DNA of 64,000 nt, from assembly GCA_038087875.1 (NCBI GenBank), contig CM076001.1, forward strand, positions 1,674,001-1,738,000. The letters run 5' to 3'. This DNA is from Malacoraja senta. Lineage: Eukaryota. The notes under the pieces are model-generated. The model had not been told where the DNA came from. It searched no databases and was given only the letters and a program-made list of their open reading frames with translations. Position 1 is the stretch's first letter. Each line of letters opens with the position of its first letter. This document shows, piece after piece, positions 1,156 to 63,546 of the stretch. The translations under genes and the position numbers were made by a program.

Positions 1156-2063
1156 CTAGTTGAACCTTTTTTTAATTTGATTTAAGGGGTATTTAATAGC
1201 AAACGTTAACTGCCCCCTGAATCTAGATTGCGTCGCTGCATATACGCAGGAGTTAATGCAGGAACCGATAAGCTCCAACATGTGTCCGCTTTCTTGCAGG
1301 ATAAATTTTGGATCGTTGGAATTGATGCCGCTGGCATAACTGTTGCCTGTAATTTGTACGTGCAGAAAATTCACAAGGTAGATCAACCGCAACAAGATAA
1401 AACACCCCGAGATCACCATGAGTAAAATGATAGACTTTTTTCTGCTCTCCATCTCCGGGTCACATTTATTTTCTCCGTTGCTCTGGCATCGGAGCCTTCT
1501 GCGGGATCGACTGGCTGCGAGAATGTGCCTGACTGTCAAAATATTGAGCAGCAAAATCAGTAGGAACGGGACGCATGGGTTCAATACAGGGCGTTGCCAG
1601 TCATAGATTCTCCATACAACGGACGTATAATAGCTACTTTTGATGACGCAGTACCAGGGTACATTATCAGTGACGTACATTGGTTCGAGAGGAAAGAAAG
1701 AGGGAATGTTTTTCAAACAGACCAGCATGCCAACTGTCCCGATAACGACCGCCGCGGTTTTTTCGGTGCAATATCGCAGTCTCAATTGTTGGACGCAAAT
1801 GGCAGTGAATCGGTCGAAGGCGAAAGCTACCGTTAACCAGACGGAAGTGTCTTTGGAAACCCAGCTGAGGACAAGGATGAGTGTGCAGCCTGGCGTGGTG
1901 GAGAAGAAACTAACTGGGAAATAAATAGCCCGTAGGCGGCTTAATATCACGACGGTAACGATGACCAGGAAATCCGCCACCGCCATAAACACCAGGTAAA
2001 GGGTGATACACTTGGAGAGACCGCACTTTCCCTTCGACAGAATCACAATCGTCACCAAGTTCG
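1156..2063 (-). CDS. GPCR-1 exon 2: GPR139/GPR142-like class A 7TM receptor, intact (325 aa with exon 1)
   Basis: Acceptor cttgcag|CG AAC TTG at 2063 and TAG at 1156-1158. Motifs ANLVTIVILS (TM1), YLVFMAVAD (TM2), AFAFDRF (DRY-like), PWYC (ECL2), INSCVY (NPxxY-like). These align by eye to human GPR139 GLPANILTVIILSQ / TIDRY / INFFLY. Confidence 0.93.
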
Positions 2064-2533
2064 CTGCAAGTGGGAGGCAGAGTAGTTAGTAATGTAACTG
2101 TCCAATTGCGGCCAATTAATCAGGACATTGGTAGACAATTTATCACATTAACAGATTGCTTACAGATTTCGAATAATCAATTTAAGGAAGGATAACGATT
2201 TCCTCGTTAAATTCATGATCCCAAATATACGTCCATTCTAGAATTCAAAATATCACTTGCTTTGAATCATATGAAGATTTAGGTTTACCAGAACAAAAAC
2301 ACTTCGAGTTACAAGAAATTGCACATGTTGGAACCTTCACCAATACACGGAATGGAAGGTACACAAAAATGCTGGAGAAACTCAGCATCTATGGAGCGAA
2401 GGAAATAGGCAACGTTTCGGGTCGAAACCCTTCTCCAGACGGAATAGGCTCGGCTGTTCAGGCAGCATCTCTAGAGGGAAATATACAGTTCAAGACTAAA
2501 CCTTAAGAAGGGATTTTTCCGGGGGGGGGTCCG

Positions 2534-2807
2534 TTTTAGAGATACAATGCGGAAACTGACTCTTCGCCCACCAAGTCCGCGCCGACCAGCGATCGTTCTA
2601 TACTACACAGGGTGGATATTTGTTTTACCGAAGCCAATTAACCGACAAACCTGCACGTCTTTGGAATTTGGGAAGAAACGGGAGAAGCCCCAGGCGGTCA
2701 CAGAGAAAATGTGCAAATTCCGTGCAGATAATATCCGTAGTCAGGATTAATCCATGGTTTCTGGCGCTGTAAGACAGCGACTCTACCCCTGCGTCACTGT
2801 GCCGTCC
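2534..2807 (-). mobile_element. tRNA-derived SINE (elasmobranch HE1/V-SINE-like), approx.
   Basis: Reverse complement matches the SINE copies at 10564 and 60078 (tRNA-like head, central domain, TAAAC-type tail). Confidence 0.75.
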
Positions 2808-2869
2808 CCAGAACATCAGATTCTGACCCGTATCTGTGGAGGCAATGGATTGTCGGCGTTTCTTATCTG

Positions 2870-3190
2870 TTTTGTTTTGTTTAGTTCAATTTAGTTCTAT
2901 TTATTTCCGTCTAATTTAGTGCAGTTCAGTTTAGTTTGGTTTAGTTTAGTTTAGTTTAGTTTAGTTTAGTTTAGTTTAGAGATACATCGTGGAAACAGGC
3001 CCTTCGGTCAACTGAGTCCGCGCCGACCAATGATCCCCGGACACAAACACTTCCCTACACGCATTTGGGAGAATTTGTGTTTATATCAAGCTAATTAGCC
3101 TACAAACCTGTGTGCCTTTGGAGTGTGGGAGCAAACCGCCGCAGCCATAGAAACCCATGGCGGGAAAATGTACAAACACTGTACAGACAT
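2870..3190 (-). mobile_element. tRNA-derived SINE 3' part with expanded (TTTAG)n tail, approx.
   Basis: (TTTAG)n at about 2870-2978 is followed by gatacatcgtggaaacaggcccttcgg, the reverse of the SINE 3' end. Confidence 0.75.
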
Positions 3191-3262
3191 CACAATTAAA
3201 ATGAATTGGGAATCATCTGACGAAGCAAATCAGTAAAGCCATTTTAAATAAGCACGAGTGAC

Positions 3263-61147: not shown

Positions 61148-61451
61148 GGGATATTCGGGGAGAGTCGGTAACGCAGCCGGAAGCCGAGTTAAGTGTGACT
61201 GAGGGAAATACAGTGAAAATACAGTGCAGCTACACGACAGATATCAGCAACCCCGACCTATATTGGTACCGACAGCAAGCGGATCAGGCTCCAGAGTTCA
61301 TTTTATATCGGGATAACAGCAACAATGAAAACGCGGATTTTGCAAGGGAGAGGTTCGCGGCTGATCAGGCCAACGGTGGAGGGAATATCCCATTGACAAT
61401 CACACAAGCAAAGCATCAGGACTCCGGCATGTATCTCTGCGCGCTAAGGCT
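61148..61451 (+). CDS. V-3: TCR alpha/delta-type V exon, intact
   Basis: GDIRGESVTQ...IQCSY...LYWYRQQ...QDSGMYLCALR with an open frame. Confidence 0.94.
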
Positions 61452-61490
61452 CACAGTGTTTCATCATTGAGCTGTTGCTCAACAAAAAGC
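61452..61490 (+). other. 23-RSS of V-3
   Basis: CACAGTG 61452-61458, 23-bp spacer, ACAAAAAGC 61482-61490. Confidence 0.95.
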
Positions 61491-63029
61491 TCAAAAAACA
61501 AACACAACCGCAAACCGCAACCTCCCAGTTCCAACAAACGGCTCATCCGCGTTAGGTATCAACCTCCGCTGTGCAAGATCTTTGGTTTCAAGAAACGAGT
61601 CTAAGCGAAACACAAATCACCCCCGTCTCACCTCAAACTCCACCACAGCAGATGTCACACACAACCGAAGTTTCCCGCTTGGCGGACTCTAATCGAAACG
61701 AGAAATATCTGTTGCTCCTGAAATCCCAGAGCACTATACCGAAAATGGCAACCAAAGTTCCTTACGCGGACCGGATTCAACGTTGCACCAATACCTCAAA
61801 CGCAGATTGAAAGGTTGCTCTTTGCGCCACTTGATAGCATGGCCGGGGTGAGAGTGGAAACAGGAACTATAATGACGTTTATGAGACGTTTAGTTAGAAT
61901 CATGGCTATAGCGGGAATGGATCGATATGGTTCAAGTGCAGTCGGATCAGATTATTTTTCAGGGTACAGTACAGTTTATTGCCACGTGTACCGAGGTACA
62001 GTGAAAAACTTTTGTCCCGTGCTATCCAGTCTCCGGAAGATAATACATTATTACAATCGAGCCTTTTACAGTGTATAGATACATGAGAAGGGAAAATTAA
62101 CGTTTAGTGCAAGGTAAAGCCAGCATAATCTGATCAAGGATAATCGGAGAGTCACCAACGAAGTAGGTCCCAGTTCAGGGCTGCTTTCTGCTTGCGGAAT
62201 GTAAAAATAAGGGGTAATCTATTTGGAACGGTTACGAGTAAAAACGTTTTCACACTGAGAGTTGTGAATCTGTGGAATTCTCTCCCTCAGAGGCGGTGGA
62301 GGCCGGTTCTCTGGATACTTTCAAGTGTGAGCTAGATAGGGCACCTAATGATAGCGGAGTCAGGGTATATGGGAGAAGGCAGGAACGAGTACTTATTGGG
62401 GATGATCAGCAATGATCACATTGAATGGCGCTGCTGGCTCGAAGGGCCGAATGGCCTACTCCTGCACCTATTGTCTATTGTCTGTTGGTCGGATGATTCA
62501 GTTGCCTGTTAACAGCTGGCAAGAAACTGTCCCTGAATTTGGATTAGTTTATCTTGGCATCATGTTCGGCACAGACATTGTTGGCGGAGGACCATATGAG
62601 GCACTCTACCTTTCATAGTACATTATAAATTGGCAACCCAGATCAATACGATGTAATAGTCGCTTAAGTGACGAATCGGCATATTTGCAAAAGGATAGGG
62701 GACTCTCAGATCGCGAACCATTGCCTGCAATTAGGCATGCAGAATTATTTGGACAATGTGGCTCCCAAATACTATCAGTCCCTAACAAATTGAAGGCACG
62801 CCAATATCTATCTAGGCCCCTTGATCGGCCGATAAGCATCTCCGCCTTGTCAGATAATCGGTGGCGGCAAAACGACCGAGCAACGTTGTTCACCGGTTCC
62901 CTGGAGTACACATGGGCGTAGGATCTGAGTTCTATTCCACGTTAGTTTCCATCGCAGACCAACTCGAATTCTGTCCTCCATCATAGCTCTTGATTAGAAA
63001 GGATGTCAAGGGTAACGTGGAAACAAAGA

Positions 63030-63455
63030 AACATAGAAAGAGAACATATGTGCATGACTAGGCCATTCCGCCCTTCGAGCCAGCACCGCCATTCAATATG
63101 ACCATGGCTGACCTTCCAAAATCAGTACCCAGTTCCTGTTTCCCCCCCATATTCCGTTAGCCCTGAGAGCGGTATCTAACTCTCTCTGTTGAAAACATCC
63201 AGTGAATTGGCCTCCACTGCATTCTGTGGCAGAGAATTCCACATAATCTCAACTATCCGGGTGAAAACGTTTTCCTCATCTCAGTCCTAAATGGCCTACC
63301 GCTTATTCTTTACTGTGACACCTTTGTTCTGGACTTCCGCAACATCGGGAACATTTTTCCTGCCGCTAGCCTGTCCAATCCCTTAAGAATGTTATATGTT
63401 TCTATGATACCCTCTCATCCTTCTAAATTCCAGTGAATACAATCCCATTCGACCA
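63030..63455 (-). mobile_element. CR1 3' fragment abutting GPCR-5 exon 1, approx.
   Basis: Paralogous to 15030-15290 and 26910-27345. Confidence 0.85.
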
Positions 63456-63476
63456 ATTTGATTGTTTTCCAGGAAT

Positions 63477-63546
63477 ACGCATACGCCCGGTAATGGACCT
63501 GTCTACGCCGTTTATTATTCAATTCTTGCAACTTTCGCTGTTCCAG
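63477..63546 (+). pseudogene. GPCR-5 exon 1 with start codon mutated to ACG (THTPGNGPVYAVYYSILATFAVP); exon 2 expected beyond the window
   Basis: Aligns without gaps to the exons at 15904 and 28032. The donor CCAG|gtaaaa is intact and the upstream promoter segment is missing. Confidence 0.85.

Follow-up and report, generated by a model that had tools for sequence, protein, structure and literature searches.

GPR139-related receptor genes interleaved with T-cell receptor V segments of probable alpha/delta type in the skate Malacoraja senta

What kind of locus places genes for class A GPCRs and V segments of an antigen receptor side by side? In the window analyzed here, a stretch of 64 kb from the skate Malacoraja senta, both kinds of genes alternate. 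The question is whether this pattern belongs to a working T-cell receptor (TCR) locus, to a GPCR cluster with stray V segments or to a faulty assembly, and whether the two kinds of genes have anything to do with each other beyond their neighborhood.

Gene content of the window

The window contains five two-exon class A GPCR genes, three of them intact, one frameshifted and one represented by an exon 1 lacking an ATG, together with three V segments of probable TCR alpha/delta type (Table 1). The gene order is GPCR-1(-), V-1(+), GPCR-2(+), GPCR-3(+), GPCR-4(+), V-2(+), V-3(+), GPCR-5(+), as already proposed by a sequence-only reading. That reading had also placed a V remnant between GPCR-4 and V-2, which has to be withdrawn: neither tblastn nor short-word blastn detects one, the open reading frames at this position are LINE debris, and a six-frame scan of the window for the C..W..C motif returns the domains of V-1, V-2 and V-3 and no fourth. 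Its count of at least three intact GPCRs is correct (GPCR-1, GPCR-3 and GPCR-4), and all three V segments have the leader, the Cys/Trp/Cys pattern and the RSS with a 22-23-bp spacer that it described, V-1 being frameshifted as assembled.

Table 1. Features of the 64-kb window, in window coordinates.
Feature	Position	Strand	Remarks
GPCR-1 exon 2	1156..2063	-	intact; from the end of TM1 through C-terminus and stop; 7tm_1 E 1.1e-14; acceptor AG 2065-2064
GPCR-1 exon 1	4559..4628	-	MHAPGNGPVFAIYYTILAVFGVP + 1 nt; phase 1; GT donor; tblastn
V-bearing duplicated segment	copy 1 9632..13874; copy 2 59122-62989	+ (copy 1)	91% identical; self-blastn
V-1 leader exon	11507..11546	+	1 mismatch in 40 nt with V-3 leader
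Dispersed-repeat insertion	11577..12094	.	~520 bp, in V-1 leader intron; interrupts the V-bearing duplication
V-1 V exon	12173..12475	+	1-bp deletion at ~12275; frameshift, polymorphic; tblastn changes frame
V-1 RSS	12476..12514	+	CACAGTG, 23-bp spacer, ACAAAAAGC
Assembly gap (N)	14060..14495	.	intergenic; flanks collinear and adjoining in L. erinacea L001
GPCR duplicated segment	copy 1 14751..19345; copy 2 26624-31770	+ (copy 1)	83-87% identical; self-blastn
GPCR-2 exon 1	15904..15973	+	tblastn
GPCR-2 exon 2	17277..18194	+	1-bp insertion ~17515; tblastn switches from frame 2 to 3 at 17515/17517
GPCR-3 exon 1	28032..28101	+	tblastn
GPCR-3 exon 2	29670..30586	+	intact; 7tm_1 E 2.6e-14; 95% identical to L. 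erinacea P0001; dN/dS 0.14
GPCR-4 exon 1	49588..49657	+	tblastn
GPCR-4 exon 2	51125..52032	+	intact; 7tm_1 E 5e-14; dN/dS 0.11 vs A. radiata P0002
V-2 leader exon	55423..55468	+	46 nt; phase 1; GTGAGC donor; 56-nt intron
V-2 V exon	55525..55828	+	C..WYR..YIC ALR; intact; V-set E 1.1e-10
V-2 RSS	55829..55866	+	CACGGCG, 22-bp spacer, ACAAAAACC
V-3 leader exon	61011..61050	+	40 nt; phase 1; GTAAGT donor
V-3 V exon	61148..61451	+	C..WYRQ..YLC ALR; intact; V-set E 9.3e-16
V-3 RSS	61452..61490	+	CACAGTG, 23-bp spacer, ACAAAAAGC
GPCR-5 exon 1	63477..63546	+	ACG at the start codon position; exon 2 beyond window; tblastn

Every exon-2 reading frame of the GPCR genes matches Pfam 7tm_1 (E 1e-14 to 1e-7), and the intact members cover profile positions 6-260 with E-values of 1e-14 to 5e-14, which identifies them as class A receptors. 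GPCR-1 is 93% identical to its Leucoraja erinacea counterpart P0014, and GPCR-4 differs at no or one position from contigs of a sequencing run of the same organism (X1). With dN/dS values of 0.11-0.21 for intact pairs, compared to 0.50 for the frameshifted GPCR-2 against GPCR-3, the intact copies are constrained proteins under purifying selection. The frameshift of GPCR-2 is caused by an extra G, as located by alignment with GPCR-3 and L. erinacea, and this gene is probably a pseudogene.

The leader of each V segment is split by a phase-1 GT..AG intron with a verified reading frame. V-2 has human TRDV3 as its closest solved structure, followed by TRAVs, while the best solved matches of V-3 are a mixture of Ig light-chain scFvs and TRDV3; both segments are nearest to Atlas clusters named TCR alpha/delta variable. 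These similarities support an assignment of the skate V segments to the alpha/delta type. Taken by themselves, the intact V and RSS elements suggest that the segments can rearrange. The sequencing runs that contain the window sequence are DNA, with exon and intron covered alike and no splice joint.

V-1 shares 96% DNA identity with the V exon of V-3. Its deletion sits in a run of C residues, where the X1 contig agrees with the window, whereas a contig from a run of another sample (X2) carries an extra C behind position 12275 that brings V-1 into frame. V-1 thus has the look of a null allele carried by the assembled individual and not of a pseudogene that has become fixed. The repeat in its leader intron has many further copies in the window.

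Duplicated units and their recurrence in batoids

Both copies of the V-bearing segment are followed by a GPCR exon 1, and V and GPCR have been duplicated as one cassette. Such a region, rich in repeats and recent duplicates and interrupted by an N gap between V-1 and GPCR-2, is also where an assembler might mistakenly bring together clusters of GPCR genes and of TCR V segments. Yet, uninterrupted sequence connects V-3 to GPCR-5 exon 1 and likewise GPCR-4 to V-2. The gap lies between the V-1 RSS and GPCR-2 exon 1, so that no reading frame runs across it. Its flanks align to positions 7460-7650 and 7650-8219 of the L. erinacea locus L001, one contiguous sequence in which a V stands on one side of these positions and a GPCR exon 1 on the other; since they adjoin in this independent assembly, order and orientation across the gap are corroborated.

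The same interleaving, which the sequence-only reading had suggested looking for in other species, was found in three other batoids when adjacency was defined as a V with a 23-RSS at 2-7 kb from a GPCR: L. erinacea (L001, L002), Amblyraja radiata (CM021380.1 at 58.78 Mb, L003) and the sawfish Pristis pectinata (CM019866.1 at 55.25 and 55.37 Mb, L005 and L008). Its presence in three further assemblies argues against misassembly, and with the same adjacency in four independently assembled species we regard an artefact as so improbable that it is hardly tenable.

L001 has the same V-then-GPCR unit as the window. In L. erinacea intact V segments of the window type with a perfect RSS occupy the same position, and in A. 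radiata and P. pectinata the corresponding position holds other V types with a 23-RSS. These neighbors also bear on an alternative in which the V segments, as orphons or decaying relics, belong to a GPCR cluster away from the working TRA/TRD locus and take no part in rearrangement. This would agree with the lack of any J, D or C element within the 64-kb window, with the frameshift and the intronic repeat of V-1, with the V-2 heptamer CACGGCG, which deviates from consensus at two positions and retains CAC alone, and with the distribution of the GPCR family over many chromosomes. On the other hand, both V-2 and V-3 are intact throughout, their splice sites and RSSs being canonical, V-1 is in frame in another individual, and decay is not what the intact L. 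erinacea segments and the 23-RSS-bearing types of the other two species show. We therefore consider orphon status very unlikely. Instead, the window is probably a stretch of the skate TCR alpha/delta V-gene array, composed of tandemly duplicated units with a V segment and a GPCR-family member.

In a tree of the receptors, all six tested V-adjacent genes fall into one batoid subclade, and the two tested genes that lack a V up to 10 kb away, A. radiata P0004 and zebra-shark Stegostoma P0018, fall outside it. All 13 sequences of the batoid subclade have R or K where the alignment places W6.48 of GPR139 in TM6, in contrast to W or Y in 101 others. The zebra-shark gene belongs to the wider clade; with no V within 10 kb of this member, the arrangement may be confined to batoids, its age being estimated from six loci.

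A GPCR family related to GPR139

Searches with the skate receptors gave 1295 family matches at E<=1e-3 and 108 representatives at the 50% identity level and E<=1e-30. All members with a named source are elasmobranch, and a single horn shark accounts for 41 of the best 120 of the 1295 matches. The family thus sampled appears to be large and elasmobranch-specific. These numbers, together with GPR139 as the nearest relative, V segments of probable alpha/delta type and the recurrence in batoids, bear out the earlier proposal of a lineage-expanded GPCR family other than the olfactory receptors (ORs) embedded in a TCR V array.

Against solved structures, a profile of the family hits GPR139 with an E-value of 7.5e-17 (64 bits), followed by the next class A GPCR at 7.6e-10. 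The label 'GPR139-like' is thus appropriate insofar as GPR139 is the nearest solved relative, but it does not extend to orthology: one skate sequence alone matches human GPR139 at E 3e-5, as a distant paralogous family would. Human GPR139 has aromatic amino acids and certain peptides as activators, and its agonist contacts are E108(3x32), R244(6x51) and N271(7x38) (PMC12775434). GPR139 structures (7VUG-7VUJ, 9M42) share with the skate family the TM1 motif G.V..YYS.L...G.PAN..T..ILS and a TM7 NxxxY without proline, and, with GPR139 as the nearest characterized receptor, these common features place the family in the GPR139-related (GPR139/142-like) superfamily. In contrast, the three contacts correspond to Ser, Tyr and His/Tyr in an HMM alignment that is reliable for TM3 and TM6 and less so for TM7, DRY is mostly replaced by DRF, each elasmobranch genome has many distinct members, and the TCR-embedded subclade carries Arg/Lys in place of Trp 6.48. 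Orthology was rejected based on the low similarity, the changed agonist-contact residues and the five copies in 64 kb compared to a single-copy GPR139.

The nearest relatives outside elasmobranchs are 'probable GPR139' paralogues of salamanders, coelacanth and teleosts (P0225, P0235, P0250, P0261) with 24-34% identity. Their similarity to human GPR139 is only distant (E 1e-13 to 1e-15), as is that of the skate family, but in the tree they stand outside the elasmobranch family. Membership of the OR family was rejected as well, since Pfam at E<=0.01 reports 7tm_1 alone and no 7tm_4/OR signature; an OR52 match seen with a single sequence (8e-5) does not return when the profile is searched at E<=1e-6.

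Passengers, partners and parallels

The organization of the window is consistent with an array that would have grown by tandem segmental duplication, each duplicated unit combining a V segment with an elasmobranch-specific GPR139-related class A GPCR. The V segments would be ordinary germline TRA/TRD-type segments with split leader, V-set domain and 23-type RSS, presumably joined to downstream D/J segments by RAG-mediated deletion, and the GPCR genes would form separate two-exon transcription units. Most likely the GPCRs are passengers: a single GPCR gene may have come to lie among the V segments of an early batoid and have been amplified with them thereafter. The V segments and GPCR-2 to GPCR-5 share one orientation; when an upstream V is joined by deletion in a T cell, the GPCRs downstream of it would therefore be lost from that chromosome, and V(D)J deletion should leave T cells as natural knock-outs for part of the GPCR family.

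A functional tie to the TCR locus would go further, with T-lineage expression of the GPCRs via shared regulatory elements or clone-specific receptor sets left by V(D)J deletion. Head-to-head V/GPCR pairs at 1.6-4 kb are seen repeatedly, at L002 of L. erinacea and at L003 of A. radiata, but the corresponding pair of the window, GPCR-1/V-1, is 6.9 kb apart with LINE debris in between. The duplication of V and GPCR as a single unit fits such a tie, yet it is expected of any neighbor in a tandemly duplicating array. The embedded subclade, with a derived TM6 change of its own and still under purifying selection, also speaks for it; against it, the OR genes among mammalian TRAVs are not known to have a function in T cells. 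Altogether we consider a functional tie quite unlikely and favor the passenger model.

These OR genes are the closest parallel. In human, OR10G2 lies between TRAV1-1 and TRAV1-2 and OR4E2 between TRAV1-2 and TRAV2, and in mouse Olfr1507-1509 lie between TRAV1 and TRAV2 (PMC4574546). As in the skate, members of a multigene class A GPCR family are thus found between germline TRA/TRD V segments, and given this interspersion the skate arrangement is a variant of a known one and not wholly new. The GPCR family is different, however, with GPR139 nearest and no 7tm_4/OR signature, and while in mammals the edge of the locus carries two or three such genes, the skate has five in 64 kb, co-duplicated with the V segments. 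The skate arrangement is conserved across batoids, and the OR/TRAV arrangement across mammals. In a further parallel, trypsinogen genes are embedded in the mammalian TRB locus. Here too an unrelated multigene passenger family resides in or beside a rearranging antigen-receptor locus, but it is a protease family at another TCR locus that is not co-amplified unit by unit with the V segments. PRSS genes are reported to flank TRB in axolotl as well (PMC12529555). In the literature searched we found no description of the GPCR family or of its placement in a TCR locus, nor any mention of the family in the shark sensory-genomics papers that were searchable. Its members carry no more than automatic annotations as 'probable GPR139'.

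Vertebrates have two classic gene systems in which a cell chooses one member out of many, the V arrays of antigen receptors and the clusters of chemoreceptor genes, and the linkage of ORs to the 5' end of mammalian TRA has for the most part been regarded as accidental. In batoids, a second, unrelated class A GPCR family would run through the TCR alpha/delta V array, apparently under selection since before the split of skates and sawfish and with a drastic substitution of the toggle residue for activation (TM6 Trp to R/K) in the embedded subclade. The batoid case is thereby an independent ground for asking whether V arrays and chemoreceptor loci attract each other. As the family is large, clustered and lineage-specific and includes pseudogenes, a chemosensory or environment-sensing role might, tentatively, fit better than a conserved neuromodulatory role of the GPR139 type. 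The many distinct genes per genome, the tandem clusters, the pseudogenes and the lineage-specific bursts would even allow for an unrecognized chemosensory family, of which the TCR-embedded batoid subclade would independently repeat the mammalian OR-TRAV linkage, a speculative reading that we regard as unlikely. If true, it would be a sign of a common chromatin environment in which each cell makes its stochastic choice of one gene. OR, TAAR and ORA genes are very few in the elasmobranch lineage (PMC11979771). Annotators of TCR loci in cartilaginous fish should in any case expect GPCR genes of this kind.

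GPCR genes and V segments of the window

ORFs listed in all six frames and tblastn queries with full-length relatives identify five genes of one GPCR family in the window. Each begins with a first coding exon of 70 nt (MHAPGNGPVFAIYY..FGVP, phase 1, GT donor), and a second exon of ~905 nt, located ~1.4-2.5 kb past the first, encodes the remainder of the receptor. All four exon-2 ORFs return 7tm_1 as the sole Pfam domain at E<=0.01. The sequence-only reading had counted five GPCRs with at least three intact members. GPCR-1, GPCR-3 and GPCR-4 are indeed intact and five genes of the family are present, but GPCR-2 is frameshifted and GPCR-5 is present in the window as exon 1 only, with ACG at the start position (63477-63479) where its four paralogues have ATG; the remainder of this exon and its splice donor are intact. 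Purifying selection acts on the intact copies (dN/dS 0.11-0.21, vs 0.50 for the frameshifted GPCR-2 against its twin). The sequencing runs matching the window are DNA-like, with contigs that cover the intron and lack the exon 1-exon 2 joint. Part of the GPCR-4 intron (50583-50946) is a very high-copy short repeat, with a summed contig depth of ~1e5-3e6 compared to ~25-30 for unique sequence, in all four runs, the related species included.

Features of the window (RSS, recombination signal written heptamer-spacer-nonamer)
Feature	Coordinates	Strand	State	Evidence or sequence
GPCR-1	exon 1 4628-4559; exon 2 2063-1156	minus	intact	ORFs and tblastn
GPCR-2	exon 1 15904-15973; exon 2 17277-18194	plus	frameshifted	1-bp insertion at ~17515
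GPCR-3	exon 1 28032-28101; exon 2 29670-30586	plus	intact	ORFs and tblastn
GPCR-4	exon 1 49588-49657; exon 2 51125-52032	plus	intact	ORFs and tblastn
GPCR-5	63477-63546	plus	exon 1 only	tblastn
V-1 RSS				CACAGTG-23-ACAAAAAGC
V-2 RSS				CACGGCG-22-ACAAAAACC
V-3 RSS				CACAGTG-23-ACAAAAAGC
LINE-family fragments	8028-9633; 20367-20978; 31900-33000; 35650-36590; 39347-40832; 43690-44800; 53139-55026			RVT_1 E 7.5e-26 at 39969-40832
Low-complexity tracts	23400-24650; 6650-7450			GC skew down to -0.47

The three V segments each comprise a leader exon, a phase-1 intron, a V-set domain and an RSS directly 3' of the V exon. The claim that every complete V carries a leader, Cys/Trp/Cys and an RSS with a 22-23-bp spacer is borne out by all three, V-1 being frameshifted as assembled. 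Scanning the window in six frames for the Cys/Trp/Cys motif revealed no further V domains. The same scan, tblastn with five V queries and short-word blastn failed to find, at the protein or DNA level, the V remnant that had been placed between GPCR-4 and V-2, an interval containing LINE debris. Among solved structures, V-2 is best matched by human TRDV3, followed by many TRAVs, and V-3 by Ig light-chain scFvs and TRDV3. The nearest Atlas clusters of both are named 'T-cell receptor alpha/delta variable' and TVA, both segments end in C-A-L-R, and both carry the 23-type RSS expected of TRAV/TRDV; a homologue search with V-3 gave a single match. The 64-kb window contains no J, D or C elements, as would be the case if the V segments were orphons; given that V-2 and V-3 are intact, with canonical splice sites and RSS, we consider an orphon origin distinctly unlikely.

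V-1 and V-3 are twins (96% identical), yet the leader intron of V-1 carries a 520-bp repeat insertion unlike that of V-3, and V-1 is short of one C in a C run at ~12275, which shifts its frame. At this position, contigs of X1, a run from the same organism as the window, agree with the window (depth ~27), whereas contigs of X2, a run from another sample of that organism, have the extra C. Consequently, the frameshift looks like a segregating null allele, neither an assembly slip nor a fixed pseudogene.

Joint duplication of V segments and GPCR genes

Self-comparison of the window reveals two duplications. The stretch 9632-13874 (V-1 and flanks) corresponds to 59122-62989 (V-3 and flanks) at 91% identity, with a GPCR exon 1 after each copy, and 14751-19345 (GPCR-2) corresponds to 26624-31770 (GPCR-3) at 83-87%. 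In Leucoraja erinacea, locus L001 has a matching V-then-GPCR unit and locus L002 has two V segments head-to-head with one GPCR. These duplications, together with the like units in L. erinacea, show that segmental duplication has multiplied V segments and GPCR genes jointly. Among public proteins, two 'probable GPR139' models of L. erinacea come closest (95% and 93% identity); their genes share one 173-kb scaffold and are oriented to each other like GPCR-3 and GPCR-1. Since the DNA identity to this scaffold is ~90-92% and dS is 0.16-0.21, the window is either this locus in a related skate or a block paralogous to it.

A run of Ns (14060-14495) sits between the V-1 RSS and exon 1 of GPCR-2, and therefore no reading frame depends on it. 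Its flanks (190 bases immediately before the gap, and sequence beginning 110 bases past it) match the adjoining L. erinacea coordinates 7460-7650 and 7650-8219, within one contiguous sequence that spans from V segment to GPCR exon 1. The join across the gap is thus corroborated by comparison with a second skate. In addition, short-read contigs of X1 match the window exactly. An interleaving created by misassembly, which this gap might suggest, is hardly credible.

Many fragments of one LINE family fill the intergenic space, and the 520-bp piece inside the V-1 leader intron belongs to the same family. A bidirectional promoter shared by V and GPCR was rejected as a general rule, as the window's head-to-head pair (GPCR-1 and V-1) is separated by 6.9 kb containing LINE fragments. 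The low-complexity tracts are long and strand-biased and give spurious ORFs of 150-320 aa rich in P, T, H, S and L.

Relation of the family to GPR139 and olfactory receptors

A single GPCR sequence from the window barely separates human GPR139 (E 3e-5) from OR52 (E 8e-5). With a profile of 21 family members, GPR139 is matched at E 7.5e-17, no other class-A receptor does better than 7.6e-10, and ORs are absent at E<=1e-6. Membership of the ORs was rejected on this profile and on the Pfam result. A proline-less NxxxY motif and the TM1 signature G.V..YYS.L...G.PAN..T..ILS occur in the family as in GPR139. However, orthology to GPR139 was also rejected, in view of the weak single-sequence match and of the agonist-contact residues: GPR139 agonists are held by E108 3x32, R244 6x51 and N271 7x38 (PMC12775434), positions that align with Ser, Tyr and His/Tyr in the family, which mostly has DRF in place of DRY. 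Pro 6.50 and Pro 7.50 are lacking throughout the family.

At E<=1e-3, the family counts 1295 proteins in a 90%-clustered collection, and one horn shark supplies 41 of the best 120 of these matches, spread over several chromosomes; at 50% identity and E<=1e-30, 108 representatives remain. All members with a named source are from shark, skate or ray. The closest proteins outside elasmobranchs are 'probable GPR139' of salamander (34%), coelacanth (31%) and teleosts (24-29%), those of salamander and coelacanth being single paralogues. Three such outside proteins (P0225, P0260 and P0261; one salamander, one teleost, one unnamed) match human GPR139 only at E 1e-13 to 1e-15 and were for this reason rejected as true GPR139 for rooting. 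'GPR139-like' is thus a fair name in the sense of nearest known relative, but sequence comparison sets the family apart as a lineage of its own, expanded in elasmobranchs, with ligands that need not resemble those of GPR139. A lineage-expanded GPCR family other than the ORs, as originally proposed, is thereby supported.

Conservation in batoids and proposed history

The search for the same interleaving in other species, as had been suggested, succeeded in L. erinacea, Amblyraja radiata and Pristis pectinata, but not in the zebra shark, where no V lies within 10 kb of the tested family gene. In A. radiata (CM021380.1, 58.78 Mb), two CAMR-type V segments with 23-RSS are located 2-7 kb from a family member, as is a CAVR-type V with 23-RSS in P. 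pectinata (CM019866.1, 55.37 Mb). At 55.25 Mb of the latter chromosome (L005:2502-2834), a VH-like V with CACAGTG-23-ACAAAAACT precedes a family GPCR by 7 kb; its best solved matches are heavy-chain and nanobody domains, which would suit an IgH V as well as an Ig-like V associated with TCR delta. V-GPCR adjacency is thus conserved in four batoid assemblies.

Trees of the family (124 and 54 members) place the genes of the window in a clade of 24 members (support 100), which divides into a batoid group and a small group from sharks. One 14-member batoid subclade contains all six tested V-adjacent genes, while both tested genes without a V in 10 kb (A. radiata P0004 and zebra shark P0018) are outside it. 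The toggle Trp 6.48 of GPR139 aligns with Arg or Lys in all 13 scorable members of this subclade, and with Trp or Tyr in the 101 other family members scored. In the window, the TM6 Arg/Lys is seen in GPCR-1, GPCR-3 and GPCR-4 (e.g., 30330-30390). Sawfish and skate genes interleave inside the subclade. The simplest reading of these sequences, based on six loci, is that one GPCR gene entered the V region before the skate-sawfish split, gained the TM6 change and then multiplied along with the V segments.

Gene content, intactness and V-GPCR co-duplication are observed, as are the adjacency conserved in batoids and the purifying selection on the GPCRs; on the side of function, we propose that the V segments join downstream D/J elements by deletion, and that in T cells deletion from an upstream V would strip out GPCR genes on the same strand. 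We take the GPCRs to be probable passengers with a non-immune, possibly chemosensory role. Their conserved adjacency to V segments could also reflect functional coupling to the TCR locus, which we regard as unlikely next to the passenger model.

Class-A GPCR genes are known from the mammalian TRAV region, namely human OR10G2 and OR4E2 and mouse Olfr1507-1509 (PMC4574546). Compared to these, the batoid genes belong to a different GPCR family, are interleaved far more densely, unit by unit, and retain their arrangement across batoids. The claim that the arrangement is undescribed would need restriction to these three features, GPCRs among TRAVs being known in mammals as ORs. Our literature search, incomplete in coverage and hence yielding absence of evidence only, gave nothing relevant for GPR139 with shark, skate or cartilaginous fish. 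GPCRs are unmentioned in the retrieved work on shark TCR and NAR-TCR loci and the antigen-receptor complex, including the Sci Adv 2025 paper on that complex, and GPR139 is unmentioned in the salamander TCR-locus papers. The catshark sensory-genome paper describes tiny OR, TAAR and ORA repertoires, without such a GPCR family.

Among the listed matches, many members from horn shark, thorny skate and sawfish are on chromosomes of 59.5, 59.9 and 57.8 Mb. These may be one homologue bearing the main GPCR cluster plus, in batoids, V arrays.
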